64,000 nt of DNA from Macrostomum lignano (lineage: Eukaryota), in the NCBI GenBank assembly GCA_002269645.1, contig NIVC01002900.1:1-64000 (forward strand), in the 5' to 3' direction. The notes below the pieces were generated by a model that saw only the letters and a list, made by a program, of their open reading frames with translations, was not told the origin of the DNA and made no database searches. A program made the position numbers and the translations under genes. Positions within the stretch are counted from its first letter, which is position 1. Each line of letters opens with the position of its first letter. Shown here in pieces: positions 1 through 45,100 of this stretch.

Positions 1-13
1 GTAGCGAAAGATA

Positions 14-137: not shown

Positions 138-175
138 GATGCCTGAAGACTGTAGCAGACACCAAACACCCTCAC

Positions 176-2891: not shown

Positions 2892-3300
2892 CGGCACCCA
2901 CCACTGCAACCCGAATATTAGTCAGTTCATTCCCATTTGCTCAATTTGTTCAGTTCTTTGTGACGCGCAGAATGCAAACACAATTAAATAATGGCATTAC
3001 GACTATTCAATAACTGATGATAACAGATGGGCAATCTGCACACAGCTAAACAGTTGAGAAATCTTCCATATAACTAATATTTAACTATTCGAATAATTAC
3101 GGGTGCCGAGCACCACACCAGCTGCCGCCCAAATGCAGCCAGAACCAATTAATCGCTCAACTGCAAACAGTTGACATCCCGCAACTTTCTATCTAAGGCC
3201 GCTTTTACAAAGTTGTCACGTGACCCCATATTTGTGGCGAAAAAAGGCCGGCACAGCAGATGAGCTTGGGAAAAACTGGCAGCCCAAATCAAAGGCTCAC

Positions 3301-13870: not shown

Positions 13871-16800
13871 GGTCGTTCGGAAAAAGTCGTCCTTCAGGCT
13901 AGCCATTCAGGGTGACTAGCCCTCAGGAAGCGTAGTGTCACCAACTCGTCGTGCAAGTTACTCGTGCCATTGAGGCCACACGTGATGCGGATCCAATCCC
14001 ACTTCGCGCATTCAAACCAATGGTCCTTGTCGCTAGGCGCGCCGAACTCTGTACAGGTTGTCATTCGCTCCTTGTTGATCTTGTTTTTCCAGTAATCGGT
14101 GTATCTACAGTGCCCTGTCCTGAGTTGGGCCAGGATGGCGGCCTCCCTTCTGGACGTGGCGGACCTGATGATCGGGTGGTTATACACGGATTTCAATCTC
14201 TGGTCGTTAGTAGTGAGGGTCTCTTTTTCGCGTATTTCTCTATTTTGGGGTGTGTTCTTCTATCACGTCCATGGCTAGGTGTAAAGCTTTTCTTTCAGCC
14301 ACGAGCGAGCTGCAAAGCGCTCCAGCGGCTGCAGTCCTCGCGATGGTAAGTTCGTTGCTGTAAGCTATACAAGCTGCACCGCCGTTTCTACCTTCACCGC
14401 TGACCGAGACATCAGTGTGAATTTTAAATTCGGCGTTGACGGCCTCCTTAATAGCCTTCCTCGCGGCCTCGGCGAGATCTGTGTCTCCCTTTTAGACCTC
14501 CTGGGAGCTCATGGAAAATCTTGATTCTGTCCGCCTGAAATCTTTTCCACGGTGGGTGTCTTTTAATTGCAAACTCTTCTCTTGGTGCGTTGCAGATCAT
14601 GAGGCAGAGTTCTCTAGTTTGGTCTCTCCATCCCCTGTTGGCTCTGAGTCTGCGGTTTCCATGCTGCTCCCACATTTTTTCTAGGGTTCCAGGGTGGGTG
14701 TCTAGCCGCTTTTTCCCACTCCATCATGCTCTTGATTCTCGCAGAGCTGGTGATAGGTAGGATTCCCGTTTCCAGATATACGGCTTCGATCGGGGTAGAC
14801 TTCATCAGGCCCGCAGTACTTCTGAGACACTCTCTTTGGGCTCGTTCTAACTTATCGAAGTTGGACTTTGCTATCCAAGGTAGCCAGGCAGCTTCGCAGT
14901 ACCAGACACAGCTTTCGACGATAGATTTATAGACTTTGATCAATTCTTCTTTATTCCATCCCCAATCAGTAGTAGCAAGCACTTTGATCACTCTGCTGCG
15001 TTTCCTCATTTTTTCGATGATCTTATCAGTGTGGTCTTGAAAGTGGAGGCCGCTGTCAATAGTGATTCCCAGATATTTGAGTGCTCTTCTGGTTTCGATG
15101 GGCCTGTTGTTGATGGTGAGTCCGAGTCTAAGCGTAGCGTCATGAGGTGACCTGCTGTACAGGCACGCCTCGTACAATCTTCAACTTTTTGGCCTAGCTA
15201 TAGGTTTTGTCTAAAGCGTTCTGGATTCTATAGTTTTGACTTCTTCGATCCTCTCCCCGCTGGTCCATATCGCTAGGTCATCTGCAAAGCCTCCGTACTC
15301 AACTCCTTCGGTCTCTTTGCCGTTCCAGTCGTTGACGTACAGGAGGTAGAGAATCGGCGCGCACACTGAGCCTTGAGGGAGACCTTGGTGGAAACGTCGG
15401 TATTTACTAATCCGTCTCCAATGCGGACTCTAGACTGGCGGCCTTCAAGGAAACTGGAGAACCAACGGGTGAGGTGTACAGGAACTCTTTCGTCCATCAG
15501 TCTTTCCACCAGTTTGACCCTACAAACCATTTCGTAGGCCTTGGAGCAGTCCAGGGTCACTGCCAGGGTCTTCTTTGGTTTACGTAATTACCATCCCTCT
15601 TGGATGTTCTGCACCAGTCTAAGAACTTGCTCCTCCGTGCTTCTACCTCGTTGAAAGCCGGCTTGCCATGGGCGGATCACCCGGTCTTCTTCCATCCAGT
15701 ACATGAGTCTGTTGCCTGTTGGTAACCATACGTTTCATGATCTTAGCGCAGACTGGAGTCAAGATGATCGGTCGGTATGAGTCCCTCTGCATGGGGTCCT
15801 TGCCTAGGTATCGGAATGATTTCCGCTTTCTTTCAAAGTCTCGGGCATAAGTATTCTTCCCAGCTTCGATTGAAAAGACCTAGCCATCTCATTCTCCTTT
15901 GGTAGAAAGGTTTTGCATAAATCACACTTCCACTCCGTCGACTCCGCCCTTCTTTTCCGGGGCCATGTTTTTGATGGCGTCGATGAGTTCTTCGTCGCAG
16001 AAGGGGATCCCGAATTCCGGGGCCTCCTCATAGATGGTGAGCCTTCTGGCCACTCTGGCCCTTTGATTCCGGTCTTCTTTTTCCATGTTGACCTATTGTT
16101 ATTAGCGTAGAGGTCTGCGAAGAGCGTGGCTTTCTCGCGGTCCGTCCAGGCGGTTTTGTGGTCCGCATTGATGTTTTGGTTGAGTGCGTTTTGCGCTCCT
16201 CCAGAGTACAGAGATTTGATGGTGGCCCATGTTTTCCTACCATCGTCCGCTTCCTCCAGGCTTTCAACATGTTCCCTCCAAAACTCTTGCTTTTTGTTTA
16301 GTTTTTTCAATAAGTTTTTGGTTCTGTGAACACCATCTTTCTCTAACTCTCCGGCGAATCTCTGGGTTCTTTGTCTCTGGTTTTCTGTATCTCTGAAAGT
16401 TCCTCGTCCCAGAAGGGTTTGTACTTGGGACCGGACTTCCTCTTACTAATGCTCGCTTCCGCCGCCTTGATCAGTGCCTCTCCCAGGGCTTTGGCCTCTT
16501 GGCTAACCGAGTTAACAGGAATATCATCCGCTAGCTCATCGAACGCGGTCTGGAAAGCGGTCCAATCAGCTTTTTTCCAGGCCCACGCGTGGCGGGCTCG
16601 GGATTCCCTAACCTCTCTATCCGTGTTAATCTCAATAATAATCGGGTAATGGTCAGATCCGAGTCCGTTGACCGTCTTCCAAGAGCTTCTCTGCCCGAGA
16701 TCTCCAGCTGCAAGGAATATATCCGGGACACTAGTGCGGCCAGTCCTCCAGTCGGTTCTGGTTGGTGAGCCGTCATTCAGTATGTTGTATCCGTACTCGC

Positions 16801-18099
16801 TGCACCAGTCAATCAGTTCTCGTGCCTCCCTTCTGCTCTCGCGGCCCTGGTCGTCGTCGCTGCCCCAATCGGCTGCATGTAGGTTGAGATCTCCTAGTAC
16901 CAGCTCTCTTCTATCGGATTTCATTCAGCTCCAGATGCTGTCCTCCTCGCGGTCATCCACGTTGGTTATCATGACTTTCTCTTTTCTGCTAGCATCGACC
17001 AGGACCCGTACGCCCTCAGTAGTGGTTCCTTTCCAGCTGTTCCAACGTCTGAAGGAGATGTTGTGCCGGATCAAGGTGAGGAGTCCTCCCCTTTCGAGTG
17101 GTCGCTGCGGCGGATTTCCAAACGGTCTTTCCGGATCGTAGTGAAGCCGCTAAAGCGGGGGTTGTACTCCGCGCTTCGAGTTTCGATTCCTGAATGACTG
17201 CGACATCGATATTTTGGTCGTGGAGGAATGCTTCGAGTTCAGCTCTTTTGGTTCCGATCCCGTCAGCGTTCCATTGGAGAATTCTGATGGTTTTAGTTTT
17301 GGTTTGTTTCCAACTTTCTTTCTTTCCTGTCGTAGTGTCTTCGGTCTCATGCTCCTCCCTTTCCTTCTTGATAGTATTTAGGCGTTCGAGACAGTCGCCG
17401 CAAGTCCACAGGCCTTTCTTCACTTCGGTTTCTAGTTGCTTTCTGCTGGCCTGGGTGCATTTCTTATGATACATTCCATCGCACCGTCTACATTTGGATA
17501 TCGTGGGCGAGACTCTAATGGCTTTCCCGCAACCTACTCTCCTGCATTTGGTTCCAGCGTTAGTCTCTCTCACCAGCTGTTCTCTACGATTCTTAAATTC
17601 TTCTAGTAGAATGCATGAGGGGGCTTCTGGGACAAAATTTGTAACGTCCACCATAATCCCATTAAATCCATTCATATTATCCCTGATAGAATCAGAAAAA
17701 AGGGGGGTCGCACTCGCTCACAAAACGTCCTCCATAATCCCATTAAATCCATCCATATTATCCCCGACAGAATCAGAAAAAAAAGAGTGGGTCGCACTTG
17801 CTCCGAAAACTTCGGAGTAACATGGAGTATGGAGTAACATACGTAAAAGATTACGACAGCTACTATAACTTTGCAGAAATCATTAGGCAATTGTAGAATG
17901 TCGTTACAATACGCTATAAGACTTTTAGACTGCATTAATAGATATTTTTACGCATGGTATTTTGCTGTGTGGCGGGTGGGTGATAGCGGAATGGGTATGG
18001 CAGCTGTTTCTTGTCATAGCGCGAGCGGTGTGTGCAGCATAGAGAAAAAAGCTTTCCCAGCTCAAGCCTTAACTAGCTCAAAGGATCCCTTGCCTAGCT

Positions 18100-18612: not shown

Positions 18613-19639
18613 ATGGCAGAAGAAAAACTTAAATCTATCTACTACAGCGACAAAGGATTCTTTGTAGGCAAAAATGCAGTCGCCAAACTCGCAGAACTAA
18701 GTAATGAATCAAAACAAACAGTTGAAAGATGGCTCTCCAAGCAAGCAGTCTACCAAGTCTATTTCCCACCAGTAAAATTTGAAAGGCCCCATTTCAGTAT
18801 TTATAAACCTAATGAGGCGCACCAAGCAGATCTTCTGTTTCTCCCCAATGACTCAGGCTACAAGTATGCTCTCACAGTTATAGACATTGCCTCCAGATAT
18901 AAGGAAACGAGACCACTTAAGACAAAGAAGTCAGAAGCAGCTGCAGCTGCCCTCCAAGAAATTTACAAAAACTCACCCCTTAGTTACCCTGAAATCTTTA
19001 TGACCGACCCGGGAAAAGAATTCCTAGGTGCGTTGAAATCACTTCGACATAAGTATGACACAAAAATTCGCTACGGAAGAACTGAGCTCCACAGAGACCA
19101 GGCTTTTGTGGAAAGATTCAATCTAACTCTAGCCAAGAGACTATTCACTAAGCAGACAGCAGAGGAGCTGAAACTAAAAAGTGGCCAGTACTATACAAAA
19201 TGGACAGACCGCCTCCCCACTGTTATAGAGCAACTGAACAATGAAGTAACACGCATGACTGGATTGAAACCGTCCCATGCAATTAAACAAGACACTGTCG
19301 AACTTAAGGCATCTCTTAGAACAGACAACACACACAAAACACACAACACAAAACACACCTCGAACTACCCTAAGCTTCCAGGAGTTGAATCACCATACAT
19401 TACGGACAAACTCTGAGTTTCTACGCTTTTTATATCTACCTGGAGAGCTAGAGAAAGACACCAAAAGAAGAGCTACAGATCCATACTTCAGCCTTGATGT
19501 ACATAAAATAGACAGACATTTTACCTCCGACTCCGGTGACTATTACTTTTTATCTCAAGCCTTTAACCCTAAATCCCCCACGCGGTCATTCACTAGAGCT
19601 GAACTCCTAGTGATACCAGCTGACACAGAAATTAATTAA
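18613..19639 (+). CDS. Polinton retroviral-like integrase (frameshift near 19400)
   Basis: HQADLLFLP, LTVIDIASRY, MTDPGKEF, VERFNLTL (DDE), with a C-terminal RRATDPYFS...RSFTRAELL segment in ORF 19277-19639. Confidence 0.88.
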
Positions 19640-20197: not shown

Positions 20198-20238
20198 GAA
20201 AAAAATTACAATTGCAAACTACAAAACAAAACTACAAA

Positions 20239-20478
20239 TTACAACTGCCTTATAACTTCAGCGAAGTTATAGTAGCTGTCGTAATCTTTTACGTAGGTTA
20301 CTCCATACTTATGAAACCAGTGAGATTTAAGTGCTTGACTAATATTAGGGACATTGATATCAACGCCGGGCCAATATTTTCTCATGTACTCGCTGCATTC
20401 TAGTTTGCATCGGTACTTACTCTTGTAATTAGGCTCGTGCACTTTGTAATAAGAACCTGGAGCGACAACTGGAAACAT
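20239..20478 (-). CDS. 79-aa unknown ORF inside the right TIR; 3' end duplicated in the left TIR (17830-17895)
   Basis: GVTYVKDYDSYYNFAE(V/I)IRQL is present in inverted orientation at both ends. Confidence 0.4.
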   Translation of the reverse strand: MFPVVAPGSYYKVHEPNYKSKYRCKLECSEYMRKYWPGVDINVPNISQALKSHWFHKYGVTYVKDYDSYYNFAEVIRQL

Positions 20479-20892
20479 TTTTAGAGAAAATTTAATTTTT
20501 TTTTCGGAGGATGAGCACCCTGCGCTGAGGATTTAAAGTCTTAGGGATCTGATTTCGCGAATTGAATGTGGGGAGAAGAATGCAGATTATTTTCTGATTG
20601 TTTCGAAGATGCTATGGGTGGATGTTAGTGGATTATGTAGGACACCTGTTATGCTCTGATTCTGGGATAATATGGATGGATTTGGGTGGATTATGGATGA
20701 CTTTTTGTGAGCGAGTGCGACCCTCTGATTCAGGGATAATATGGATGGATTTAATGGGATTATATTTGAAGTTTTCAAAGCGAGTGCGACCCCCCTTTTT
20801 TCTGATTCTGTCGGGGATAATATAGATGGATTTAATGGGATTATGGAGGACGTGAAAAATTTTGTCCCAGAAGCACCCTCATGCATTCTACT

Positions 20893-21373: not shown

Positions 21374-21916
21374 CTGTTGCTGTTGTTAAGGTCAACAAGA
21401 CAAGCTGTTGACAAGAGGTTTTTTGTCTCCCACCTCATCAGTGAAATGAGTTTTCTGATCGGTAAAATTCAGATCACTGAAAAAAGTTTTGTTTTAAAAA
21501 GAAAATCAAAGATGGCAAGTGTCATCCACATAGCGTTTGTGGTATCTCGGAGCAGTTTCTAACTTCATACGTACATTTTCATATGTCAAGCTTGAATTAA
21601 GACCAAAAATACTTGAATTCGTATCCATAAAACACAAACCTAGTCTCAATGTTCAACTGCAATACGGCTATTCTAAGTAACCTGACCACATTACGGAACT
21701 TCCCTCCCCCTGACATGTCCTCTTGGATCCTGCAGCCAAATCTTTAGCATTTAATTAAATGTTGAAATATTCCTGTTTCTGTCTAGTTTATTAAATAAAA
21801 ATTTAAATAAACAGTCAATCGCCCTGAAAATGAGCAAATGTAGTCCAAATGCATCGGAAATTAATAAATAAATGTTGATAAGATCTATTGAAGATATTTT
21901 AACCATTTTATTTTAG

Positions 21917-22321
21917 ATGGCAACAAAGGAAATCAAGCAAAGTCAGGATCTCTCGCTCAGTCTAGAAGACGAGCCTATAGAAGACACAGAGCCGCTTGTT
22001 TCCTTTCAAAGCAACCAAGAGAAGCAACTTGCAGTTAACGAACCATTGAAAAAAGCAACTGATTTTGAAAGGCTCACTCCAGGCAGCATCGAGTGGGTGA
22101 AGCCCGGTGATGTCTTCAAGATCAACGGTCAGCTGATTATTGTTGAAGAGGTACAGTGTAACAAAGTCTGTGTGGCTTGCAGAGAGAAAAATCTTCTTAG
22201 AGCTGGCCAAGCCTAGCTCTCTCAATAAATACCAGTATATTTTCCAGCCTGACTAGGCTGACCAATCAGCCGCTACCTCTGGCGTGCTCGCGCTCCAGAG
22301 TATGCACATGCGCGAGTACAA

Positions 22322-22369
<48 letters not shown>

Positions 22370-25300
22370 CCCCCCATCCCCCACTCTGCACAGAAAGCGA
22401 AACGCAGTCACCACATACAGCATGCACCCAATAACGTATATGAATTTAAAGCGATTCATTGCACTAAGAACAAGAAACAGTCCAAATTTACACTTTTCAA
22501 AGACAAGAGAGTATCAAGAGAAAATTTCACGGTCAATGTGATCAAATCGAAAAGTACACACCGTCTGCAGCCCGATTGCCAGCTCGCTCTTTTCCCAACG
22601 TCCCATTGCCACCCGCCTAAGGATGTTGTCCAAAGAGCTCGCAGCCGCCTGAACGAAATTCAGAGTGACTCGTCACTTTTCGTCAAGTGGTGCAAGATGA
22701 AGGACCCAACCCACTGTTCCGAGATCCTTGTGCCGATCTTCGTGTCAGACGACCACGAAATCCACGAGGTGAAAGTTAAAGACCACCTGAATTTGCAGCA
22801 TGTTGCTGGCCCACTTCACGGAGAGGTTTCAAATATCGACAACCTGAGTGACGAATCGCTGCTGCTAACGATGCGCATTCAAACTAGCAGGATGCGATCC
22901 GTTCCATTGGTTCGAATCGAAGAGAAGGAGCTTCTCGCCCCCGTTCCGGTAGTAGCGTCAGTTCCCCAGTGCGTGGACGAGGAGGAACTTCTCGCCAGGG
23001 TTGAAATCCTGGACAGACTTGTGTTCAGCAAAGACATCTCTACCCTGGCATTCTGCCGACTGCTTACTAATCCGAATCTTCGTGATAGCGCATGGGGTGA
23101 GCAGGTGGCGATGCTCCCAGACACCGAAGCTAAAGTAAGTCCTCTCTGCAAAAGCACGAGTCCAGAAAGTTTAAAAATCGGCAGCATCATTTCAATCGAT
23201 GGAGCATACACAGTGGTCATCGCAGTTCGCTGTGGTGCTGATAGAGTCCATGTAAAGATGGTGCAGTATGGAGCTCAGTCATTGGATGAAGACGAAACAG
23301 AGTGCCAGATCAAGTACATAATCAAGAAAAGAGAGACGGACACACAGCTCAGCGTACACAATGAGATTAAAAAGGATTGCCCTCTGTACCACCCTGTTCT
23401 TGGGCCACAAGGTTTATATGCAGAAGAAGCATTGACGCCTATTTTACTTCAAATCCTGAAGAAGGGTGATGTGATTCGAATAAGCTCGCGCTGGATCATT
23501 GTTGAAGATTCGGAATTCGCAAATGGCTCGTGCACTGTGGTCGCTATTTTCTACGACAAAATAAAGCTTCTCGAGACAAACAGGGTAATTAGACATACTC
23601 TTAACTTTAGGGTTATAAACCCTAGTAAGCAAGTTGAACCAGAGGGCTGGCTTTGTCGCTATGCTGAGGCCTGGTGCTTCGACCCAGACATTGTGATCAA
23701 AAGAGCTCATAGTCGACTTAACGAGAGTCAGTACTCACTGATCTCTAATAACGGAGAGCATTTTGTGAAATGGTGCAAGACAAAGTCTTCCAGTCACAGG
23801 CCAGAGTGCCTTGTCCCAATTTACTTGCCCAATGAGCACACTCACTCGGTGAAAGTTGGAGATCATCTGAACTTCACATGTGATAGTGGTACAAAGCTCC
23901 ATGGAGAAGTGACTGAGGTGACAGAGTTGAAGTCGAAGCAGAATATTCTACTCTGCATGAACGCGATAAAGCCGAAGTCAATTTGCTGTGTGCAAAAAAG
24001 TGAGCTCACTCTTGTCGGCCCTGTGAGCGTCGTTGTAACGGCCCCATTGTCCGTCAGTGAAGCAGAGCTGACGCAGCGAGTTCTGTTTATCGATAATTTG
24101 GCTTTCAAAGGAACAGAAAGCTCAATGAATATCTGCCGTTTTCTAACTAAATCAAAACTTGAGCTTGAAGACTGGAAGGACGTAATCTGCCGCAGTCAGC
24201 CCTTCAAAGATGCAGCAACTGAGCAGATTATTCTCTGCCGCCAAAGATGTCCAGATCAGTTGAAAGTTGGCGATATAATATTTCTGGATGGTGTGTACCG
24301 AGTTGTTGCCGAAATCCACCTTTGTGATGCTGAAGCAGCTGGACGATTCAAGATCGTGACTGTTCAATATGACTTGAGTCTGACAGAGAGTGGTGTGTCA
24401 AAGCTGAAGTACGCGATTCGAGCAGAGGAGACGGAAGCCGTGCTGTGCGTTCACAACAATCCAAGTTTGGACTGCCTCTTACACGGTGCTGGAAGAGATA
24501 TGCCAATGTATACATCTAATAAAGTTTACGATGTACGAACCATTTCACAGGGCTGTGTCATTTCGATGAGAAGAAGGTTTCTGCAGTATCAGCATTCCGT
24601 GGTTGTCAGTGATCCTACACTGGAAGGAGATAGCGGATCAGCTCAGTCCTGTGCTTCATTGGAGGTTATTGAATACGCGATGAAGCTTACTAGCAGAAAT
24701 GAAGTTGTGAAAGATAAAATTCGAGTCGATGTTTCAAAGCAGGAAGTCTACCTCGTCGTGTATGATAAAACCGGTGAAGAAAAGAAATGCAGTCCAAACA
24801 AAGTGATTGAGAGAGCCCACTCAAGGCTGGGGGAAAAGCAGCACAACACACAATGGAACAACAGTCGGGATTTCGCTCGCTGGTGCAGCCTTCAGCACCC
24901 AAGCAACAGGGAGCAGTGCAGGATTCCAGTTACATCGGCTCAGCAGCTGGTCGATTTCAAAAGAGGTCCCGTTAAGTTTCGTAAGTCGCCAGAAATTTAT
25001 ACCCACGACGCTGTAATGAGAGACTGCACAGCAGTTGAAGGTTGCAGCGACATCGTCAGGGTTACTCTGTATGAAAATAACCATGAGCAGCGTAGAGTGA
25101 GGCTCGAGGACTTAACCATCGATAAAGGTGAGAGCTTGATTCGTCGGGTGAATTACGAAGGCAATAAGGAATTCGCCACCGATGAGTTCAGCATCTTGAA
25201 GGACCTGATTGATTGCACTTTTCTGAATGCCGATGATGACGTTAAAGGATGGACGGGGAAAGAGAAAAAGTGTGGCAGTCGAGTCACCAGCCGAGACTTC

Positions 25301-26149
25301 TGTTATTGGCTCAAAACTACGAAAAAAGAACTCTGCAGCATTAAATACTTGTTTGAAAAAAACCTTGAAACCATGCAGAAAAAAATGGCGAAACTGTGCT
25401 GCGAAGGCGTCCTATATGACAATACGGATGAGCAAAGACGTCTGAGAATCGAAATCGAGCATGGAGTAGACAGGCGCGACTTAAGACTTCATGACCACAT
25501 CATTCTGAACCGTACGGTAGATGAAAAAGTAAAAGAAGTTCATTTTATCCTAGTTGAGTGGAACGAGGAGACACACACTGGTGTCGGTGTGACGTACGAG
25601 TTTCCACCAGAACCTACTGGAATTGGATTTATGAAGTTCAATGGATTTCTTCGAGTGAGCGGCCCTAATCAGATGGATAAGGTCGTTCACAACTCGGAGC
25701 CTGACTGGAATGAGATTGATGACAGGTTCAACACCCTAAGGGGCATCAAGGAATACCACCTCTTGCGCAACAATTGCGAGCACTTTGTAAATTTTTTGAT
25801 TTATGGCCGCGGTAGCTGCCTTCAGCTGAGCAAGCGGGTCTGGCAGATCGCCCACACGTTACCGAGCGCTATTCAAAACCTAGCTTCCTCCGTGACTCGA
25901 GTACTGCGAATGGCCGTCGCTGTAGTGCTGAGAGCGAATCCAACCATGGGAGAAGCATTTTCGTTTATTCCAGACATCCTCGCAGCCGAAGGTGGAAGCA
26001 TCGCTTTGATCGGCATTGTGAATTTTGTTGCCTGGCTACTGCTTCGACATCGCCGCGCAAACAGTGGGATGTCCCTTCAGGAGTACCAGGAGAGAAGGCT
26101 GGGCATCCTGTGCCGCGCACTTATTCCCATCGCGGGAGCATCGCAGTAG
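21917..26149 (+). CDS. Multi-LRAT/NC (permuted NlpC/P60) domain protein, ~1,329 aa; exons 21917-22150 and 22394-26149
   Basis: GT-AG intron 22151-22393 joins both exons in phase 0. Repeated V(V/I)xRAxSRL motifs; NCEHF at 25772-25786; hydrophobic C-terminus; acceptor ttttag directly before the ATG. Confidence 0.8.
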
Positions 26150-27884
26150 CACTCATCACATTCTTCAACCCTTTCTCGGCAGGCCTGACTGGCGCAGGTG
26201 TCGGTGTTGGTGTCACGACCTTCGGAATTGCCTGTGCCATACCGAAGCTGCTGGTTATTATCAAGGCCTGGAGGCATCCGTAGGCTCGCTAACCCCATGC
26301 TTCCAAAGTAGTGACAAGTCGACTCAAGCTGAAACATCAAAAGCTGAAGACTAAAACAGTGCTGCCATTTGCCACTCATCTGCGAGATCAGTTTAACATT
26401 TTAAAACCGCAGCACGTTGTGATAAATAATCAGAGTCGATCAAAATAAGAACTATTTCTTATACAATAGCGAATCGTCCGGGCCTGACAGGCGTAGCTAC
26501 TTAAACATACGCTACTAATAGTAGCGCACTCTAGTCTCCTTCGCTAAGTACATTGATTTATTTGTTTAATCCTAAATAATATCAAAATCACCATATTACT
26601 ATTAGTACTAAATTAATCATAAGTATACTAGATTAGCATATTTTTGAAAATGTACCCTGTCAGTTTGACAGACTTCCCGCCTCTTGCTTGTTCTGTGTAC
26701 GACTTACCAGCCTGGATTGTAGGTGATTTTTTGTTTCGTTATCATTCACTAATTTTGAATTCTATATCTTTTATCCAAAATTATTTTAATAATTAGTAGA
26801 CTATAAATTTTAGTAATCACTAACTTACAATGTGACAGCAATTGACTGAAATTTCAATGAAATAAATTGTATAATCCGCTAATTTTACCTGATAAATGAG
26901 GATTTGTAATCAGCTGATTTGTGCTAGCCGTCTTAGGAACTCAAGAACCCTGCCTTGCTGTGGACATCACCCCAGCAAGGCAAACTATTTGCACATTCAG
27001 CACAATTAGTTTTGGTCATTGTTCCACAACATATAGTTATTACCCCATGTAGAAATGTCATAACGTGACTGCTTTTTATAATTATTATTTATTCTCGCCT
27101 CCCTGTCTTTGCATTTAGAACGAAAAATGGTGAAATAATGACGTCTGTGCTGGGCAAAGTACACACAGTACTCGTATTTTTTCTGCCATTATTCAAACTC
27201 TGCTACCATGCTAAACAATCTGCCATTGCAAAGTACTCAGCGTAATTACCAATCAGGAGCGGCTCCTTGCTTTTGTCCTTGAACTCCAGAATCAGCGGCA
27301 GCGTCCTGTCTGCGTGACTCAGGCGTCTGGTATAGTTGGTCATCCGCATGGCGTCCTCCAGTGGCTGTTTCTGCATTGGAAAGAGTGGCTGTTGTATTCT
27401 GGAAGTCCACAAGTACAGCAAGTTGTCTCTGGCGGAGTGGCCCATGCTTCAATCTTATTACGCAAACGAATAAACTTCAAAAGTAGGCGACATTTGGTAC
27501 CTGAAGTCGCTTCATACCGGCCAAAAGTTCACAACGTCAGAATGAGCAAAATGTCGGCCCCTTGATTACTCAAAATGCCGACGCTTCGCATTGTCAAAAT
27601 TTTGCATCTTCAAAGTTCCACAAAATCGAAACTTCGAAAGTCGTGCCCTTTTTGAACTATCGACGCTTATGAAGGGGCCGACATGCTCGCTTTTTCGACG
27701 ATGCGAAAGAAAGTATCATTCGACGTTATAGAATTTGGGGGTTATGATCAGGCGAGGCCCGGTACATCACTAGCCTACATAAGCCTTGTCAGATAACTTC
27801 ACAGGCATTTAAAAAATTATGAAACTACAAAAAACTATCAGTTTTACAAAGCTTAAAATTCTGAATCGTTGAATCTAGAAAGCG

Positions 27885-28185
27885 ATAATACACCTGCTCC
27901 GATTGGGCCAGATGTGCAACTGACAGTTCAGCCGCAGCTATTGCGTGGCGCATCTGACGGCTGCATACGGCTATTCAGTCCACGGACTGGAGGTCGCCAC
28001 ACACACTCTCTCAATTACCCCAGCTAATGCTGGCACCCATTTTACAGCAGGGTGAACTGAACTTCTGAGGCAATGCAAAGTTAAATGTCTTGCTTAAAGA
28101 CACAAATTGTTCCAGTGAGATCGAGAATCGAACCGACGACCTACGAGTCGTGAGTCCGACGCTCTGACCACCAAGCTACAACCCC
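27885..28185 (-). mobile_element. tRNA-derived SINE with CORE/MIR-like central domain
   Basis: A box TAGCTTGGTGG and B box GGTTCGATTC, then gcaagacatttaac...ctgtaaaatggg; homologous to the copy at 63.4 kb. Confidence 0.75.
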
Positions 28186-32790: not shown

Positions 32791-35399
32791 CTCAGCGTTT
32801 AAATATTTATACTATATTTATAATTCTAACTTAGTATTGACAAGAAGTTAAAGAACTAGCAAGTATAAAACACAGGGATATACGTGCTATAAAGTTGTAA
32901 TTATTGAATTGGAACAGCCAAGAAAAAAGTGAAAAATCGTGCAAAGTGAGGCTGTTAAGGCAGTCAAAATTCAACAAAGTTAAATAGTTATAAATTACTG
33001 CTTTTTGTCTGGGAAGATCGGAAGTGATTCTGGTTCTGGAATCGCGCGGTAATATGAAAGGCTAGTTGAAAAACGGCATGCGTGAACCATGTAATTTACG
33101 AGCGTACTTGTAATTCCAAGAAACAAGTTCCCACTACGGTTCACTAATTATCTTACTAGCTAGAGGCCAGAGGCTAGGTCTAGGATAGGTTTAATTCTAC
33201 TTTTTTTGCTCTGTTACTCCAATAGGATGATGCCTATATAGTCTATATGTGGTGTAGATTTACTAGTCAAGTTATCTATTATAGAGATAGGCCTAGGCTA
33301 ATATAAAGCAATTTTGTGCTCATGTACTACAGAACATAATAAGCTATTATAAGCAATAAGCATTAAACTGCATATGGTGGCTGTGGGTAGAAAATGCATC
33401 TATTCTACAATTTCAAGGTTGTAAATTGTTTGACTTGCTCTGCATCGCCTATAACTATAGGCCTAATGACTTATGACATCATAAAAAAATTGAATCATTT
33501 GCAATTAAGATTTATAAACTTTAATCATTATTACTTTATAGTTTATACTTACTTAGCCATTCATTGTCATGAAATTCATTGTCAAAGATCTTATTATGGG
33601 CATTGAAACTCTGGGTCTAGATTAAAATGGCCAAAGCAAAATGCTACTAGGATAATTGCTAATAGGATTAGGACAGGAATCTTAAGTTTAACATGTCATT
33701 TAACTTATTATCCATCAAAATATCAAAGTTATTTTTATAACGTTTGCCTTTCCTTTAGCTTTATTAATATAAACCAACAAAGAAAATATATTTGCCTAGC
33801 TACTATTGTGATTTAGAATTTGATTTTATTTTAGCTATTAAAAGGAAATACTTTATTATGCAAAATGAATAGGCCTATTTAATTCATTAGCATTAAGGGC
33901 TATCCTATAGTTTCGCACATTAAATTATTTTAAGGAATTATTTCGCCCTCTATTCAAGGGTGGTAGGGGGTGGGGGTTATAATTAAACGTGCGAAACTAC
34001 AGGATAGCCGCATTAAGCTAGGCCATATAAATTTGGTCTTTTACATATGGAACTATAGTAATATACTATAGATTGGCCTATAGGCCTAGATATCTTGAGG
34101 TATTTAATTTAGCTTAGGCTAAAAGATTAGATTTAGTTTAAATCAAGTCAAGCATTGCTTTCCTATTAGAAAAAAGTTGTTAAATGGTAGATTTCTGTCC
34201 AGTGCATTTTCAAAAGGACTTTATAGTGTGGTGCATTTTCTGTAAGTTACTACTTGGAATGTATATCAAAACAACCATATATAAAATGCCCTAAGTGTCA
34301 AAAGTTGCCATGCTTTGTGTGGTCTTCTATTGTCATAATTACAAGAAGGTAGTGATGGATCGAAATTCGATATTCGATTTCGATATTCCAAATTTCAAAA
34401 CTAATTTTGCATCGAAATAATTTCAATTTCGATTTTGAATTTCAACACCATTCATCAAAAATCATTTCGAAATTTTGGTTATATTTTAACAATTTAGACA
34501 TTGATGATCATGCTACACAAGTAAGAAAATCTATAGGAAGTGAAAGGAAGTGCGGTTCAAAGACTCAGTGGGGAGGTGAGAATCGCCTTTTCTACAAGAA
34601 AGATTGTGCGGGGCACACACTGTTCCAGGCCTTGTGCTGCACCCACCTCAACCTCCACAAGCCCACTGGCTGAACTCATCGACCTGGATTTTAATTGGCT
34701 AAAGACTTAAAGCCTTAATGAAATGGACTACTCGTATCTAGATCTTCAGCTTAAACAGCAGTGAAGAATAATACAACTTCTACTATATTTCTATGTACGA
34801 GTGTATAATACATAATACATCAGCATTTTCTATTTTGTATTTTTAAAGTAAGTTAGTGGAACGGCCGGAGGGAGAGAGCAAAGGCAAGATTGGAGAGCAC
34901 AAGCAAAACATCCTACCACCGACCCTGTATGGGCAACTTACAAGACACGAGTATATTTGGAAAGCATTCGAAAAACTATTTGGAAGATTAAAAGGTAAAC
35001 AAAGCAAAAGGAAAAAAAGAAGTTGCAGGAATTGCGAGAAAGAGGGCCAAAAGCAGAAAAAAATGCATGCAAGCTGGTGAGGAGAGATAGGCTGAGGCGG
35101 GCACAACACACAGGCTAAAAAGGCCCCACAGACACCCACCCCCCCCCCCAGGGGCGGCATACCCACCCCCGGACCAAGCACCCCCAAACACGGGCGACAA
35201 CAAGCCCCCCCCCCCGGCCCCACTAACAGCGATTGGCCAGCCAATCTACACTTAGCGGAACGGCCAGAGGGAGAGAGCAAAGGCAAGATTGGAGAGCATG
35301 AGCAAAACATCCCAAAAACCTGAACAAAGGGATTTAAAAGTAGGGTACACGGCGACGGGGCGAGTCAGGCGAGCGCTAGGAGGTGCCAACAGCACACGG

Positions 35400-36320
35400 T
35401 TGACCATTGGGCGCAGGAGACGGAGGCAACCTCCCGACTGCGGCTGCGGCAGGTAGCGTGAAATGGCAATGCTGCGCCAGCCGCCCAGCCGCTTGATCTG
35501 CTCCATGTTGAGGCCGCTGTCGAACGCCAGACAGGCGCCACCCCGTCGTAGAGAGTGGCCTGAGAAAGCTGTCACCGCCCAACCCGCATCTGTCAGAGCC
35601 CGAGCAAGGCGGCGGTCGAATTGACGCGATGACATCGGGCACCAGCTTCCGGCGATGTGGACGCAAAACAGCCGAGTGAGCGCCGGCGCAGACCGCAGCT
35701 TGTTAGCCTAAAAATGCCGCCGCAGGGCTTGGACAGGACATAGTGGGTGGCTTCCGAGCGCTGGCAGCACCGCCTCCTGGTAGTGTTGTCCGCATTGGTT
35801 GGTCTTCGACTGTCGAACTCGGAGTCTGCAGCACTGACTATCGGCCTGAGTGTCGCCGACGAGAATGGAGTGGCGCCCGCAGACATTTGCTTTCCTGAGA
35901 AGCGCCCAGAAGCAGCAGAGCACGGCGGCCCAAAAGGCGGCGTCTGCAGGGTCTCTTGGGTTCACCTGGTTTGCCAGTGAAAGCAGAACAGCCGGGTGAT
36001 GGGGTCTTTCTGCTTGACTGAATGGCCGCTTGTCCGTTTGGCGCTCTTAACTGCCAGATCGATCAGGCCGGACTTGGTGATGTCGGGGAGTTGCGCCAGC
36101 TTGAAGCTCCAGCTGATGGCCGCCAGGTGTCCACCGAGGCTACCGGGTGCCACGCCGCGCTTAGTCAGGCGTCGCACATACTCGACCAAGTGCACCGGGG
36201 ACGCCGCTAGTGGCTGAACACCTTCGAGGTTGCAGAAGCGCTGCCACTGTTCGAGGTTTGAAGCGTACGATGCCCTCGTACTAGGAGCCCAGGCGTCGGC
36301 GAGAAAGCGAAGGAGCGGCC
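35400..36320 (-). pseudogene. Tyrosine recombinase (frameshifted)
   Basis: AWAPSTRASY, LLRKAN (R), QSKTNQ, HPLCPV, GHSLRRGG (HxxR), GGWRS...SRYL (W, Y). Confidence 0.9.
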
Positions 36321-36329
36321 CGGGTAGGC

Positions 36330-36790
36330 GGGAGGCAGGAGGCGCCGGACCTGCAAAAGCAAAAGGAAGACGGAGGCAGGGCAGAGTGCGTGGCGCGAGA
36401 TGCAGCAGGATTCAGCAGCTAAATCATGCAGGCTACGGTAGAAGCGGAGAAAGAAATTTTGCGCCCCGCTTCTAGAAGCAAGGCGAGAGGCCGGGTCCGC
36501 CAGGACCTGGAAGGCGCCTGGAACGTGAAAGGCCCGCAGCCGCAGACCCCACGCGTCGCAGGCAAGCGACAGCGTGTGCAGGAGCCGGTTGACGTCGTTA
36601 CATGGCGAGCTGAGCTTGTTCAGCGCACCGACAGCCGCCGAGCTGTCGCTGTACACGACGATGCCCGCACCGGCGAAGCGGCCCGGGGCCGCGAGGATGC
36701 TGAGGACAGGCGTGATGGTCTCCTTAATGTTGATGTGGGCCGAAGCAAACTCCTCCACCTCAACCTTGTGGCGGCCAGACTACGCGACCG
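36330..36790 (-). pseudogene. DIRS/Ngaro RNase H
   Basis: HINIKE, YSDSSAAV, HVPG...LADPASR. Confidence 0.8.
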
Positions 36791-37977: not shown

Positions 37978-40652
37978 CAACAACAACAAGGTACTGCTCC
38001 TGCCGGCCAGGCAGTAGCCAGAAAGGGGGGAGCAGTCAGAAAGCGCGTCTCTTGGCCATTGCCCTCAGGAAGTCGCATCCCCCTGCTTGGTCTGGGGCGC
38101 CAGCATCACTCAGAAGTTGGTCAGGGTATCGCACCGTTCGCCCTTGGCCTCGCCTCCGTGGTCCCTGCAGCTTGAGCAGCAGCACGTCGTGTAGCGGCTC
38201 AGGACAGCGGGCCTCCGACCAGATGACATGGCCAGCCAGTCGAAGTCGCCGCCCGCGCAGCAGGTCAGAAGGCCGCGTCAGGCGCGCCCTAGTGTAGAGC
38301 GCGGCATTGGTCTCGCTGCCTGGGCCGCTGCGCACTCCAAAGCTGCACGCAGCATTGCCACATGTGCAGCGTCCAGCTGCCTCTCCAAGGCGTCCGTCAG
38401 GGTCCAAGTCTCGGCGTTGTACAACAGGACAGTCTCGACGACTGCCTGAAACAGCCGAGCCTTGAGCCCGTCGTCCAGGGCCTCAGATTGGAGCACGGAG
38501 TGCACAGATCGAAATGCGGCCCAGGCCAGTCCTCGTCGTCTCTTCAGGTCATCAGCAACGTCCGGCACGGAACCGCCAAGGTACACAAAGCGCTCGCAGC
38601 GGGTAAGCATAAATGCATTCCCGGCAGCGTCTCGGTAATTGATCTCGGCCAGCAAGTCAGAGGGCACCGTGAACACTACCGTCTTCCGCGTGTTCAGCTT
38701 AAGGCCGACCCGCGACGCTGCCGCCGTCAGGCCATCAAGCAGCCGCTGGGCACCTTCAGCCGTCGATGAAAGTAGCGCGAGGTCGTCTGCGTAGCCGAGA
38801 ACGGAGAGCCGCTTCTCCGGGTGCCGCCGACTCGTGCGTCTTCTCAAAAGGAAGCCGTCATCCAGGTTGGGCAGGCCGGTTCTCAGCACCCAGTCCAGTG
38901 CCAGCACAAACAGAAAAGGCGCCAAAGTGTCACCCTGCAGCACGCCTGACGACGTGCTGAATTGGTCTGACAGTCCATCTGGCGTCATCACCGAAGCGGT
39001 CGTGTCCTGGTACATCGCCATGATGGCGGGAATCAGTTGCTCTGGTACATTGTACGCACGAAGCACGAGAGGCAGCGCGCCGCGAGCCAGCGAGTCGAAG
39101 GCCTTGAGGAAATCAATAAAGATCACCACGAGACTTGACTGATGGATGCGCGCCTCCTCGATGATGCGGCGGAGGGCTAGGATCTGCGTCACTGTGCCGC
39201 GATGTGGGCGGAACCCGTTCTGCTCAGTTCGCAGGAACTGGTCCAGCACAGGCTGTAACCGAGCCAGCAGCACCCGGTTGAACAGCTTCGCGGCGCAGGA
39301 CATAAGCAAGATCCCCCTGTGCTCCTCCTTCCGTGTCGTGCCTGGCTTCTTCGGGATCGCGACGATGTGCGCAGTTGTCCACTCGCGGGGCGCGGCATCT
39401 CCAGAAAGGACACCGTTCATCACACGAGCCACCTCAATGGCGACCCTTGTGACTCGCAGCACCTCGATAGGCACCTCGTCCGGTCCCGGGGTGCGACCTC
39501 CCGGCGCCTGGCGAGCGAACTGCACAACGTCGTTGCTGGTCACTGGCTGGGTGTTGAAATCTTCCTGCGACGGCAGCGCCGTCTCGAGCGGCAGTGGCAT
39601 CACTTCTGGCAGAGGCGGTGGCGGCGCGTTGACGATATCGGCGAAGAAGTCGCGTAGCTCATTTCTGCGCGCTTCTGGCGTGTCGCCGGTCAAGTTTAGC
39701 ACCGTTTTCTTCTTGCAACCAGTCAAGGCGTTGATTGTCGGCCATACGAGCCGATTCCGTTGGTCGAGCCCTGCGGAGGTGACGCTTCGGATGGCATCAT
39801 CAACAGCGGCTTGCTGCTGCCTGACATAAACGTCTGACAGGGCTTTCTTGGCCTCTGCCGTCGGTCTCCTGGACCGTCGCAGCCTCTCGACTGTCCGCCT
39901 CGCCTCTTGAACCTCCTTGTCATCCGCCCAGACAGGGAGACTATGGGCTGCAGATTTCATCAGTGGCAGAGTTTTGCTCGCTGCCATCGCTACTGCCGCG
40001 CTAATTTCAGAGTAGTTACCGGTGCTCGCAGACTCTCCCAGTGTGGTGGCGAACGCGTACGCGAACCTGCTGCGGGTGCTAGAATCTCGCAGAGCCCGGA
40101 AATAGCGGCGTGGGGGTCGCTTGGGCGGCCTGTACAGCGGATCCCGGATGCGAAGGTTGCAGAAAAGCAGGCAGTGGTCGGATCGGATGGACAGTGGGGC
40201 CATCGTGTCGCAGTCTGTCACCCGACTGCGCTCGCGGTTACGAACAAGAATGTGGTCGAGCTGGGCCCGGCGCGTCGTGGCGTTTCGGCACGCATTCCGC
40301 TTTCTTTGCTTACAACCAGCAAAAGTCGCCAAACGAAAAGCTGGCTTGCGGAAGCGCGTGTTCGCCGACACCAGATCTTGCCGTGACATAAGGTCCGCAA
40401 GCGCACTAGAGTTGCCATTCTGGCGCGGGGACACGAACGGGGAGCGCTGGGACCTCTCCGCGACAGCGTTGAGATCGCTAAGCACCGCCAAAGTGTCACG
40501 CATTGCGACCGACTCGAGCTGCTCTGACAGGAAATCAAAGAACTGCGCCTCATGCTGACGGGCAGCTGTCGGTGCATACGCGCAGAACAGCCGGGCGTTA
40601 CGGCCTCGCAGTCTCACATCCACACGCAAAAGCCGAGGTGACACGGGGACAC
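37978..40652 (-). mobile_element. 5'-truncated RTE-like LINE with a long APE-RT ORF (38278-40644)
   Basis: TSD AGTGCCAA at 37970-37977 and 40653-40660; (TTG)n tail; DLNA, LDHILV, SDH, QNGFR, DFLKAFDS, GVLQGD, YADD. Confidence 0.92.
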
Positions 40653-42181: not shown

Positions 42182-45100
42182 TGTGATGCTCTGCTGGCAA
42201 CTCTAGTGCTTGATAAATAACGAAGCTCGTATCTTGCTTTGCTTGTTTATTTGGCTTTAGGACCACATTAATGCTAGCGGGGCTTGTAACAAGATTATGA
42301 AGCTAGGACTCTTATATATTAGGAAGGGATGAGGGAGGCGGCTTTTGGGCGCAGCGGCCATAGACTATTGTGAAGTGGCTCATGCACTGTCGTCAGAACG
42401 TGGACTCTTCTCCAAAGACTTAGAGCAGCGTTAATGCTGATGCACTTTATTGTTTTCTATATTGCCTTAAGGCTCAAACATGCTTTTAGGAAACAAACAA
42501 GAGAGCGGTGCTCTAAAATATACGAATGCCTGTAGAGAGATAGGACATAGACAAAAAGCGAAACTTGAAGGGAACGAGAGAGTCAGTAAGAGAATTAATA
42601 GTAGTACATCAATGCGCGCGTTGATAGGAGGCATTCTCTCAATGCACAACATGCCCCTTCTTCAGAAGCTGCTTACAACCATGACCTATATGTATGGGTT
42701 ATATCAATAAAGTATAAAATTTCATGAGTAACTTTTAGAGTGGGGAAACATATCTTATTCAGTTCATTGTTAACAGGCAAGGTAGTTATTGTTCACTGCA
42801 ACTCATGAGAATGCTATGGGGTGAATCTCTCGGGAGGTCGACGGTCTCGCAAACTTCGTCTCAGTTGGGCCTGCTGTTGGTCATCGGGCGGCACGTCTGC
42901 ATTGGATGTGGGAACAGCATCTTCATCATCGTCATCGGCGTCTGAAGGCTGGTTTTGAGGCGCCAGCTGATTAGTGCTAGCTAACTGCAACCGACTGTCA
43001 GCGAGAACCCACGCCGTGTTCCTGCCTGCAGTCATCACAAAGGTCGCGGGGGTGCCTGACGACGATTCATGTGGTTTGTAGTGGACCGTCTCCCCCTGAA
43101 CGAAAGGTGAAACTACGGGCACGCGCAATCGTCTGCCAAAGACCAATTCCGCCGGGCATTTACCTCGGGACATGGACGAATTGCGATGGTGGAAAAGTAT
43201 CTTCTGAAGGAAGCGGAGAAACTCCATGTGGGTGACGCGCTCGGTCCACGCTCTCAACGCCGTCTTGACAGTACGAACTGCCCGCTCCGCCGATCCATTT
43301 GCCTGAGGGTAGTACGGAGGTGACTCCAATTTCCGAACGCCGTTGGCGCGTAGGAATGAGGATAGGGGATCACCAGTAAACTCAGGTGCGTTGTCCGACA
43401 CAAGTAGTTCGGGTACACCAAATCGAGAAAACACGGTAATTAGGGACCGAACAACGCTATCTCCTGATCTGTCACGCGACGGAAAAGCTTCTATCCATCC
43501 TGAAAACGTATCGACGACAATTAGGATATTTCCAATGTCCTTTACATACGCCCAATCGATGTGGATCCGCTGGAAAGGAAAAGTAGATGCTGGCCAAGTG
43601 TCTCTTTCTTTGAGCAGTCGCGGTCGTAGCTGATTGCATCCAGAACATCGACGCACAAATTGTTCAACATCAAGCCGCATCCACATTAATGCTAGCGGGG
43701 CTTGTAACAAGATTATGAAGCTAGGACTCTTATATATTAGGAAGGGATGAGGGAGGCGGCTTTTGGGCGCAGCGGCCATAGACTATTGCACGAGCGTATG
43801 TCATGTCTCCCTCCAGAAAGAAAGAGTTGAACTGTCTCCGAACAATGTAAACTTTATGTCAGGAACTCAACAGATAACTAATTCAAATTCAGCGTGTCAG
43901 ATTTCAATTTGGTTACTCGTAATGTGTAGCTAATGCGGTTTTTTAGCAGTCACGAGGAGTAGCGGTCTGGTTGGCGACGCATCCGGGTGCTACGGCGAAT
44001 TCCACCTGCTTCTTGTTCTTGCGCGCCTTGGGTCGAATTGTCGCTGGGGTTCCCTGCCTCCGTGTTTGCGGGATCTCCTGCTATTGATACTTCATCGTCG
44101 TGTGGCAGTGGAGCAAGTTGGTTGTCGCTTGCCAAACGCAGTTCGCTCCCGTCCAACACGAAGGCCGTGTTGCGGCCTCGGTTCATCACGTATTCGACAG
44201 TGGAGGGTGGAACGTCCGAAGTTGGCTGATACAGAACGCGCTCGCCGTGGTTGAACGTGGAGACTACAGGAGCGCGTAGTTGGCGTCCGAAAACAATCTC
44301 AGCTGGCGTCTTGCCCCTACACGTGGATGAGTTTGGGTGATGAAACAGCAATCGCTGTAGATAGGGAACAAATTCAGCGTGTGTGGTTCGTTCGTTCCAG
44401 GCCCGCAGAGCTCGTTTGACTGTCTGGACTGCTCGCTCAGCCGATCCATTGGCCTGGGGATAATAAGTTGGGGATTCCATCTTCTTTATGCCATTTTGGT
44501 GCAGCCAGCTCCTCAGTGAATCGCTGACGAACTCCAGAGCATTGTCCGAAACTAAAAGTTCAGGCACGCCAAAGCGTGTGAAAACAGTTCTGAGGCATTT
44601 AATGATCTGATCTGTGGATCGATCTTTACAGGGAAAGGCCTCGATCCAACCAGAGTGAGAGTCGACTGCTATCAGGATGTTTCCAACATTCTTTACGTAC
44701 GCCCAGTCAACGTGAAGCTTTTAAAACCGGTTTTCAGTCGATGGCCAGGTGTCTTTGGTCTTCCTCAATCTGGGCCGCAGCCTGTTGCATACATCACACT
44801 GGCTGACAAATCGCTCGATGTCAGCGCGCATTCCAGGCCACCAGCAGGACAAGCTCATGAAGTTGAGTGTCGCCAGAGACCCAGAGTGAGTGTCATGCGC
44901 TGCACGAAAAGCTTCTTTCCGCAGTCTTGGCGGAATGTAGACCTGGCGACCCTTGAACAGTAAGCCGTCCTCGATAGTTAGGCATTGCGATACGGCCTGG
45001 AATGGTTTCTCAGCCTGAGAACAGCCAGCCCAGTTTCCCGAGCGAATTCGGTGCATCACTTTTTTGATGAGCTCATCCAACTCTAGCTCTGCGGCAACCC

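Follow-up and report, generated by a model that had tools for sequence, protein, structure and literature searches.

In this study, we analysed a window of 64,000 nucleotides (nt) from the Macrostomum lignano contig NIVC01002900.1 and found that the plus-strand gene at positions 21917 to 26149 encodes a protein of nine LRAT/PLAAT-derived modules, in the order M1-a1-b1-M2-a2-b2-M3-M4-M5, followed by a hydrophobic C-terminal anchor. We consider it reasonably probable that the locus is a member of a lineage-expanded family of intronless, membrane-anchored multi-LRAT genes, in which M5 is PLAAT-like and the upstream modules have a binding or regulatory role. The identity and the anatomy of the gene are read directly from the data, and the chemistry is what we infer.

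In the proposed mechanism, M5 would work in the PLAAT/HRASLS-like manner, forming a thioester acyl-enzyme with an acyl chain of a phospholipid at the cytosolic face of its own membrane. It would then either hydrolyse this chain (phospholipase A1/2 activity) or transfer it (acyltransferase activity). The eight upstream modules, which have lost the thiol and appear to be under purifying selection, would be non-thiol units that bind lipid, membrane or a partner and position or regulate M5. Those that combine His with Ser (a2, M3 and M4) could keep a weak serine-type chemistry.

Module Architecture

The Pfam LRAT profile (PF04970) matched the whole protein with 87.4 bits, compared with a gathering score of 24.3. 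When the modules were scanned singly, M2, M3 and M5 were all above the threshold (Table 1), and the remaining six gave no Pfam match. A family hidden Markov model (HMM), built from M2 and M3 of flatworm proteins and iterated over 160 collected relatives, also found M1 and the N-terminal half of M4 (independent E-value, iE, 1e-5), both of which lie below Pfam detection.

The module types were then related to known modules with hhalign, in which flatworm-only module profiles were compared with bivalve-only LRAT-module profiles, and hence the two sides are independent. Against the bivalve Cys-type modules, the M5 profile reached 99.9% (E 1e-36) and the M4 profile 98.2% over its full length (E 5e-14). 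For the a-type profile the probability was 96.1% (E 3e-9); its match is confined to the beta-sheet portion and places the His of the LHGEV motif on the H-box His. The b-type profile gave 76-87% against the N-terminal ~40 columns of LRAT-like modules. A shallow profile-profile comparison between the module types within the protein had given less than 30% probability and was replaced by these deeper profiles. The sequence profiles give strong support for homology of the modules to LRAT, and, judged in this way, essentially the whole protein appears to be LRAT-derived, with seven full modules and two half modules.

The first-pass annotation of this DNA, made from the letters alone, had proposed at least four recognisable H-box/NC modules with more degenerate modules in between. 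All four of its motif strings are present in the open reading frame (ORF), in ORF coordinates at amino acid (aa) 34 (ARSRL..DSSLFVKWC), 390 (AHSRL..NNGEHFVKWC), 760 (AHSRL..NNSRDFARWC) and 1078 (NNCEHFV). The motif look-up and the Pfam LRAT matches bear out the recognisable modules, and the family HMM and the profile-profile comparison do the same for the degenerate ones. A fifth NC-like motif, VTSRDFCYW, which had not been listed, lies in M4.

A higher-order repeat of ~330 aa had also been described. The repeat exists: when unit B (ORF aa 70-430) was aligned with unit C (430-800), the Smith-Waterman score was 400 (z ~60 vs shuffles) and the identity 36.7%. Its period is 356-370 aa. Units B and C are closer to their own counterparts in the M. 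lignano protein BOX15_Mlig000580g1 (P0001; 42% and 45% identity, respectively) than to each other (37%). The a-b-M unit of ~365 aa was therefore duplicated before the divergence from the annotated M. lignano genes, and both copies have been retained.

An AlphaFold2 (AF2) model of the segment from a2 to M5 (682 aa, 12-sequence alignment) had a mean predicted local distance difference test (pLDDT) value of 79.7. In this model, each full module starts with five to six strands and continues with two to three helices; a2 has five strands and three helices.

Table 1. Features of the multi-LRAT gene and of the surrounding window (positions in the window).
Feature	Position	Strand	Residues and evidence
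Exon 1: start codon, acidic N-terminus, first M1 beta-strands (..VKPGDVFKINGQLIIVEE)	21917..22150	+	P0001 aa 52-85 align here; ttttag precedes ATG
Putative intron within ~290-nt insertion in M1, including (GA)n at ~22325-22365	22151..22393	+	Donor/acceptor signals, in frame
M1 remainder (..ARSRLNEIQSDSSLFVKWC)	22394..22714	+	Ser171 at nucleophile position, no H-box His; family HMM on spliced aa 61-185, iE 8e-15
a1: divergent LRAT-like, ..STLAFCRLLT	22715..23164	+	H-box His (PLHGEV), Thr at nucleophile position; hhalign
b1: beta-only half module (LKIGSIISIDGAYTVV..LSVHN)	23165..23443	+	b-type profile; homologous b2 all-beta in AF2
M2 (..AHSRLNESQYSLISNNGEHFVKWC)	23444..23803	+	Gly532 at nucleophile position, H-box His lost; Pfam 39.0 bits; family HMM iE 2e-26
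a2	23804..24259	+	H-box His581 (KLHGEV), Ser655 at nucleophile position, conserved Cys659 at +4; hhalign; AF2
b2: beta-only half module (LKVGDIIFLDGVYRVV..LCVHN)	24260..24535	+	AF2 all-beta; b-type profile
M3	24536..24913	+	His812 (24593-24595), Glu838, Ser902 at nucleophile position (24863-24865), NNSRDFARWC 'NS box'; Pfam 32.1 bits; family HMM iE 3.5e-31
M4, with long insert (FLNADDD..)	24914..25345	+	His949 (25004-25006), Ser1044 at nucleophile position (25289-25291), VTSRDFCYW; hhalign
Helical linker M4-M5	25346..25441	+	AF2 helices 490-528 of modelled segment
M5	25442..25879	+	His1128 (25541-25543), Thr1145, Tyr1199 (25754-25756), Cys1206 at nucleophile position (25775-25777) in NNCEHF; Pfam 30.6 bits; hhalign; alignment A4; AF2 pLDDT 80.5
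C-terminal tail: amphipathic helices, hydrophobic segment 1 (~25985-26047), basic loop, start of segment 2, stop TAG 26147-26149	25880..26149	+	Hydropathy scan, homologue alignment
G run, one base short of family frame (frameshift site)	26134..26136	+	Adding one G gives ..IPIAGSIAVALITFF.., colinear with homologues
Out-of-frame continuation that completes hydrophobic segment 2 and adds segment 3; last residues ..KAWRHP before the stop	26137..26283	+	Three-frame translation, alignment A1, hydropathy
Integrase-core ORF between inverted copies of the 5' part of a long interspersed nuclear element (LINE)	18613-19416		
LINE pieces	30.5-32.8 kb		
Putative DIRS-like or Crypton-like element	35252-35635, 36207-36758	-	Tyrosine-recombinase-like motif (..GHSLRRGGA..GGWRS..) and an ORF that is RNase H-like by eye
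LINE reverse transcriptase	38278-40644		
Near-complete long-terminal-repeat (LTR) retrotransposon coding region	42814-47727	-	gag-like 46666-47727; reverse transcriptase/RNase H 45378-46556; integrase 42814-43779; more ORFs between

Catalytic Residues

The NC boxes were aligned on the F (+3) and W/C (+6/+7) positions; the b half modules do not contain this region. A Cys at the nucleophile position was found in M5 only (Table 1). The earlier description, in which the Cys is replaced by Gly or Ser in the upstream modules and kept in the last one, agreed with this result except for a1, which has Thr. The H-box His is present in a1, a2, M3, M4 and M5 and absent from M1 and M2 of the window copy; it corresponds to H60 of LRAT and H23 of PLAAT3, and the third triad residue in PLAATs is His. 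H60 and C161 were reported as the catalytic residues of LRAT-like proteins (PMC3184775).

In M5, His1128 lies in ..EVHFILVEW, which was aligned to the HHAIV/HWAIY box with a one-residue register set by eye, and it precedes the Cys, which is the permuted order. Tyr1199, seven residues before the Cys, is invariant in the 38-sequence alignment A4 (M5 and 37 LRAT-like modules). These residues suggest that M5 is probably catalytically intact. In M3, the His is invariant in four homologues, and the nucleophile position reads S, S, S and G.

The a modules were also considered as hidden active Cys-His units, and this was rejected, as their Cys stands at +4 (S-x-x-[FI]-C; compare 'SRDFC' in M4 and 'NCEHFC' in bivalves). 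The invariant Cys is the fifth residue of helix 101-110 in the AF2 model of a2. From this model we read it as a structural residue and not the nucleophile, in a register assigned by eye.

Macrostomum Relatives and Selection

The closest homologues of the window protein are three M. lignano proteins, BOX15_Mlig000580g1 (P0001), Mlig026729g1 (P0002) and Mlig027402g1 (P0003), which are full-length colinear with it at 45, 45 and 36% identity, respectively. Their alignment (A1) showed a shared module order and a three-segment anchor ending in Pro, from which the window departs only by an insertion in M1 and a terminal frameshift. The genes of P0001 and P0002 are single ORFs. The window protein keeps 122 of the 132 residues (92%) that are invariant in five paralogues, which is as good as any annotated member.

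The ratio of nonsynonymous to synonymous substitution (dN/dS) between P0001 and P0002 was 0.28-0.49 for a1 to M4 and 0.37 for M5, compared with 1.37 for M1, 1.26 for the N-terminus and 0.85 for the tail; the overall value was 0.51. The thiol-less modules a1 to M4 are thus constrained like M5, and M1 is decaying in a neutral manner.

One 27-kb M. lignano locus carries four tandem copies, including a partial duplicate with a frameshift, which suggests ongoing birth and death in the cluster. This duplicate lies at L001:14848-17101 (NIVC01001606.1), is 93% identical to the P0001 gene, extends from a2 to the C-terminus and is split by its frameshift near 16346-16368. The neighbours of the M. lignano family genes are ordinary genes, which encode a GTPase of the Arf/Ras type, a protein with a PID domain and a peptidase of family M14.

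The Wider Family

An exhaustive profile search of 1.84 billion representatives returned 248 proteins at E<=1e-3, in many of which up to ten matches to the M3-type module were found. The relatives that were named comprise additional M. lignano paralogues, proteins from bivalves (Potamilus, Mytilus, Mercenaria) and proteins from the hemichordate Ptychodera. The first-pass annotation had called the array unusual; the tandem LRAT architecture is indeed there, but it is not unique to this locus, as the gene belongs to a multigene family with analogous arrays in bivalves and a hemichordate.

Of 405 related modules, 160 have Ser and 151 have Cys in the nucleophile column. Exactly one Cys module was found in 40 of the 52 array proteins, that is, those with at least three modules from flatworm, bivalves and hemichordate. 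In every case in which the hydropathy scan picked up hydrophobic segments, this single module adjoins them. The order differs between the groups. In bivalves, the Cys module is followed by the membrane segments and then the Ser array (C, segments, SSSS), whereas in the flatworm the array comes first, followed by the Cys module and the membrane segments (..S-C, segments).

The bivalve arrays (P0004, P0008, P0010, P0013, P0031) reach nine to ten modules, with an N-terminal Cys-type module, hydrophobic segments and then His/Ser modules of the 'NRSxDF' type. Two arrays of Ptychodera, P0049 and P0088, read DNNC, with the Cys module last and by the hydrophobic segment, and SC?CSN, with two Cys modules and no segment detected.

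We put forward, with low confidence, the idea that one thiol LRAT module beside an anchor, together with a conserved His/Ser array, is a recurrent and undescribed animal architecture that occurs in two orientations, Cys-TM-Ser(n) and array-Cys-TM, where TM is the transmembrane part. If it is true, the architecture would define a new class of multivalent machines that remodel membrane lipids. The Ser modules would then be serine-type acyl enzymes, or units that present acyl chains or substrates and feed the single thiol module.

Gene Model and Lesions

The long plus-strand ORF, listed as 22538-26149 (1203 aa), is open back to 22394. The frame from 22394 to 26149 is thus open for 3.75 kb, with ~1250 codons without a stop, and gives a predicted spliced product of 1329 aa together with exon 1. 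The earlier description of the gene as nearly intronless agreed with this model, which consists of one long open frame and one short exon, and with the homologues, which are single-exon.

The start ATG lies immediately 3' of ttttag (window 21911-21919), and ttcag was found directly before the ATG in three M. lignano paralogues (L001:9996-10003, L003:9996-10003, L001:2666-2673). The ttYAG / ATG junction suggests a conserved acceptor-like site, which may belong to an intron of the 5'-untranslated region or to a spliced leader.

In M1, P0001 residues 86-105 correspond to 345 nt of the window, a stretch in which the M. lignano homologues show no interruption. Reading through from exon 1 gives VQCNKVCVACREKNLLRAGQA and then a stop at 22214-22216, and this read-through resembles the ancestral 22-23-aa spacer of M2. 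These two observations indicate that ~290 nt in M1 are an insertion. Apart from (GA)n, no repeated copy of the insert was found in the rest of the window. A donor site (GAG / GTACAG) would begin an intron at 22151, and an acceptor with a strong polypyrimidine tract (..CTCTGCACAG / ..CCCCCATCCCCCACTCTGCACAG then A) would end it at 22393. Joining the two keeps the frame, and the insertion may be removed by splicing. The predicted intron would take out most of the insertion and swap ~21 aa for ~37 new ones.

The second lesion is at the 3' end. After ..ALIPIAG the frame closes with SQ and a stop, and the adjacent +2 frame runs SIAVALITFFNPFSAGLTGAGVGVGVTTFGIACAIPKLLVIIKAWRHP to a stop at 26283 and matches the C-termini of the homologues, all of which end in Pro like that of the shifted frame. 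An intron behind this change of frame was considered and rejected, because the alignment leaves no space for one, and the change is therefore a 1-nt indel. Either the assembly is in error at this point or the protein is truly truncated. The hydrophobic tail that had been noted earlier exists as an anchor, but the 1-nt frameshift had been overlooked, and one of the three segments is in frame.

There are then three readings of the window copy: the gene may be intact and the assembly wrong, the copy may be a truncated variant, or it may have been disabled very recently. The last of these corresponds to the explanation that the locus is a pseudogene of the multi-LRAT family whose inactivation is recent, stopped in M1 and deprived of its anchor by the frameshift, which we regard as possible but doubtful. 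In that case, the long open frame would persist merely for want of time to decay. It would account for the stop in the exon 1 read-through where the homologues are continuous, for the missing base in the G run and for the position of the gene in transposon debris. It is also consistent with the search results, as no protein identical or nearly identical to that of the window was found in 5.8 billion clustered sequences or, by exact look-up of the ORF, in the gene index, and with the frameshifted partial duplicate in the M. lignano cluster. However, a frame of ~1250 open codons that keeps 92% of the family-invariant residues speaks against it. Both lesions lie at the gene ends; one is in M1, the one neutrally evolving module in the relatives, where the insertion is bounded by good splice signals whose use would bring back the frame, and the other is in a homopolymer run, a typical site of assembly error.

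Weighing the Proposed Function

Several observations weigh against a functional anchored array with a PLAAT-like M5. As encoded, the protein meets a stop inside M1 unless the insertion is spliced, and the hydropathy scan finds one of the three hydrophobic segments remaining, with the other two in the shifted frame. The third triad position of M5 is Thr1145 (VGVTYEF), where relatives read VIHY. In P0001 and P0002, Asp takes the place of the M5 H-box His (..SEADFILTEW and ..SEVDFILTEW, respectively) with NNCEH kept, so canonical Cys-His chemistry is not universal in the family. Among the 405 modules, His+Ser is the commonest state (131, vs 117 with His+Cys), and the upstream modules may not be mere scaffolds. 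Foldseek searches of the PDB with the 682-aa and M5 models gave no match at E<=0.001 and no PLAAT or LRAT entry. Finally, no literature on LRAT arrays in Macrostomum or bivalves was found. The family is already deposited under automatic names, and we found no description in the literature of its architecture or of the rule of one Cys module at the membrane.

The claim of the first-pass annotation that the last module is catalytically intact is thus supported by its Cys, His and Tyr, but not by the third triad residue or by the two closest homologues. The M5 H-box His is kept in the window, P0003, P0005 and P0154. A structural paper notes that, to judge from mutagenesis, LRAT may do without the third triad residue (PMC3142127), and the Thr in M5 therefore does not exclude activity.

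The PDB matches of the models were limited to weak small beta-barrels (Tudor, KOW, CAP-Gly) and Bet v 1. Among the predicted viral structures of BFVD, the M5 model matched a Harvfovirus protein (E 2.8e-4) and a Marseillevirus 'Lecithin retinol acyltransferase' (E 1.2e-3), both with probability 1.0, and more weakly the kobuvirus and bat picornavirus polyproteins (E ~0.14). In a sequence search of the PDB with M5, the NCEHF helix alone matched HRASLS2/PLAAT3 (E 0.14-1.3). The first-pass annotation had named, as a result that would refute its proposal, modules that do not model as permuted NlpC/P60 folds; the models speak neither clearly for such folds nor clearly against them.

The upstream modules had been described as a pseudoenzyme array. 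This agreed with the loss of the thiol, but a2, M3 and M4 keep the H-box His together with Ser and are constrained like M5. One could suppose that the His+Ser modules, with the bivalve 'NRSxDF' modules among them, act as acyl hydrolases or transferases of the serine type, which would make the protein a multi-enzyme. The second His is usually kept in the numerous His+Ser modules as well, M3 has His812, Glu838 and Ser902 at the three triad positions, and the His+Ser modules are as constrained as M5. We nevertheless think this unlikely, as the nucleophile position varies (Gly in M3 of P0003; Thr, Lys or Met in a modules) and the conserved Tyr is His in M3. To our knowledge, enzymatic activity has been demonstrated for none of the LRAT-like proteins in which Ser takes the place of the nucleophile, vertebrate FAM84/LRATD included.

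The family strings together up to ten LRAT-type domains and consistently retains one thiol module at the membrane, with the other modules under selection in a His/Ser state. It thereby offers a natural system for two questions. One is the way in which pseudoenzyme modules work together with an active paralogue within one chain, and the other is the role of 'NSE-box' domains such as those of human LRATD1/2.

Genomic Context

The gene sits among transposons, as had been stated from the first reading, and flanking retroelement fragments were found on both of its sides (Table 1). Inverted copies of the 5' part of a non-LTR element (window 17605-17905 and 20230-20892, 86-98% complementary), with PHD-like and endonuclease-like ORFs, flank the integrase ORF.

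Such surroundings, together with the lack of introns and the giant-virus proteins that are the best structural matches of M5, could point to a passenger carried by a transposon or a virus-derived insertion, a possibility that the first-pass annotation had itself named as one that would refute its proposal. However, no direct or inverted repeats bracketing the gene were found within 14-34 kb, and the gene is not linked to any ORF for a transposase or a reverse transcriptase. The family members stand in tandem arrays beside ordinary host genes, and relatives of the modules occur across flatworm, bivalve and hemichordate genomes. We rejected the cargo explanation, which we regard as extremely improbable. 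For annotation, this means that the locus is to be treated as a member of a host gene family and not as transposon debris, with two lesions for the annotator to resolve.

The array had also been proposed as a possible decoy-sensor or membrane-remodelling immune effector, which we considered in the form of an immune decoy-sensor or a membrane-rupturing effector against pathogens. PLAAT enzymes can damage organelle membranes, and the lineage-specific expansion, the tandem clusters of intronless genes and the moderately high overall dN/dS of 0.51 are circumstantial points in the same direction. The protein has no immune domains and no signal peptide, and no pathogen-related context was seen; the neighbours of the M. 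lignano genes are ordinary (Arf/Ras GTPase, PID, peptidase M14), and no supporting literature was found. As neither context nor homology supports an immune role, we consider it very unlikely.

A weak tblastn match at 55.4-55.8 kb was examined as a second LRAT gene and rejected, since it is a His/Thr-rich low-complexity repeat. This tandem repeat (..HTHNVTQGTHTQ..; window 55400-55900, minus strand) lies in a 409-codon ORF without a Pfam match. The G+C content of the window alternates between blocks of 58-65% (1-4000, 38000-40000, 50000-52000, 58000-62000) and 35-45%, and the block at 38-40 kb coincides with the LINE reverse transcriptase. A short repeat family at 27891-28180 and 63432-63639 is common to the M. 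lignano locus L003 (17609-17880, 21169-21363), with 74-80% identity.

Comparison with Known LRAT-Type Systems

Work on PLAAT and LRAT enzymes, for example on their part in retinoid storage, in the synthesis of N-acyl-phosphatidylethanolamine, in organelle breakdown and in the entry of picornaviruses, deals with single small domains. These proteins (PF04970, circularly permuted NlpC/P60) share with M5 the order of H-box His, Tyr and NCEHF Cys, followed by a hydrophobic anchor. They have one domain of ~130 aa, whereas the window protein has nine modules, of which eight are without the thiol. In addition, the third triad His of PLAATs is Thr in M5, and the single anchor segment of PLAATs contrasts with three in the relatives of the window protein.

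The Ser-containing modules resemble FAM84A/B (LRATD1/2), in which Ser replaces Cys and the H-box His is kept, as in a2 (Ser655/His581), M3, M4 and the bivalve 'NRSxDF' modules. FAM84A/B are single-domain soluble proteins, and the likeness is one of residue pattern. The change from Cys to Ser gives the 'NSE box' of FAM84/LRATD, and it was reported to have arisen within the vertebrate lineage (PMC3184775). It suggested that the Ser in the window modules is probably an independent replacement. The picornavirus 2A H-NC proteins and the LRAT-like proteins of giant viruses have the H-box/NC motif family in common with the window modules; these viral proteins are single domains, and there is no sign of a recent viral origin for the window gene.

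The arrays of bivalves and hemichordates (Potamilus KAK3603616, Mytilus XP_076105740, Mercenaria LOC128548127, Ptychodera XP_070565188) typically have one Cys-type module by the hydrophobic segments, and the non-Cys modules of the bivalve arrays are mostly His+Ser. They differ from the window protein in that the Cys module of bivalves is N-terminal, which is the opposite order, and in that the a and b modules are absent from both groups. The relationship to the window protein is at the module level only (E 1e-56 to 1e-9). The closest known counterparts remain the 'LRAT domain-containing proteins' of M. lignano, which carry automatic annotation only. They agree with the window gene in the module order, the Pro-ending anchor, the intronless structure and the AG / ATG junction, and the window gene is set apart from them by the M1 insertion, the frameshift and an M5 H-box His where P0001 and P0002 have Asp.

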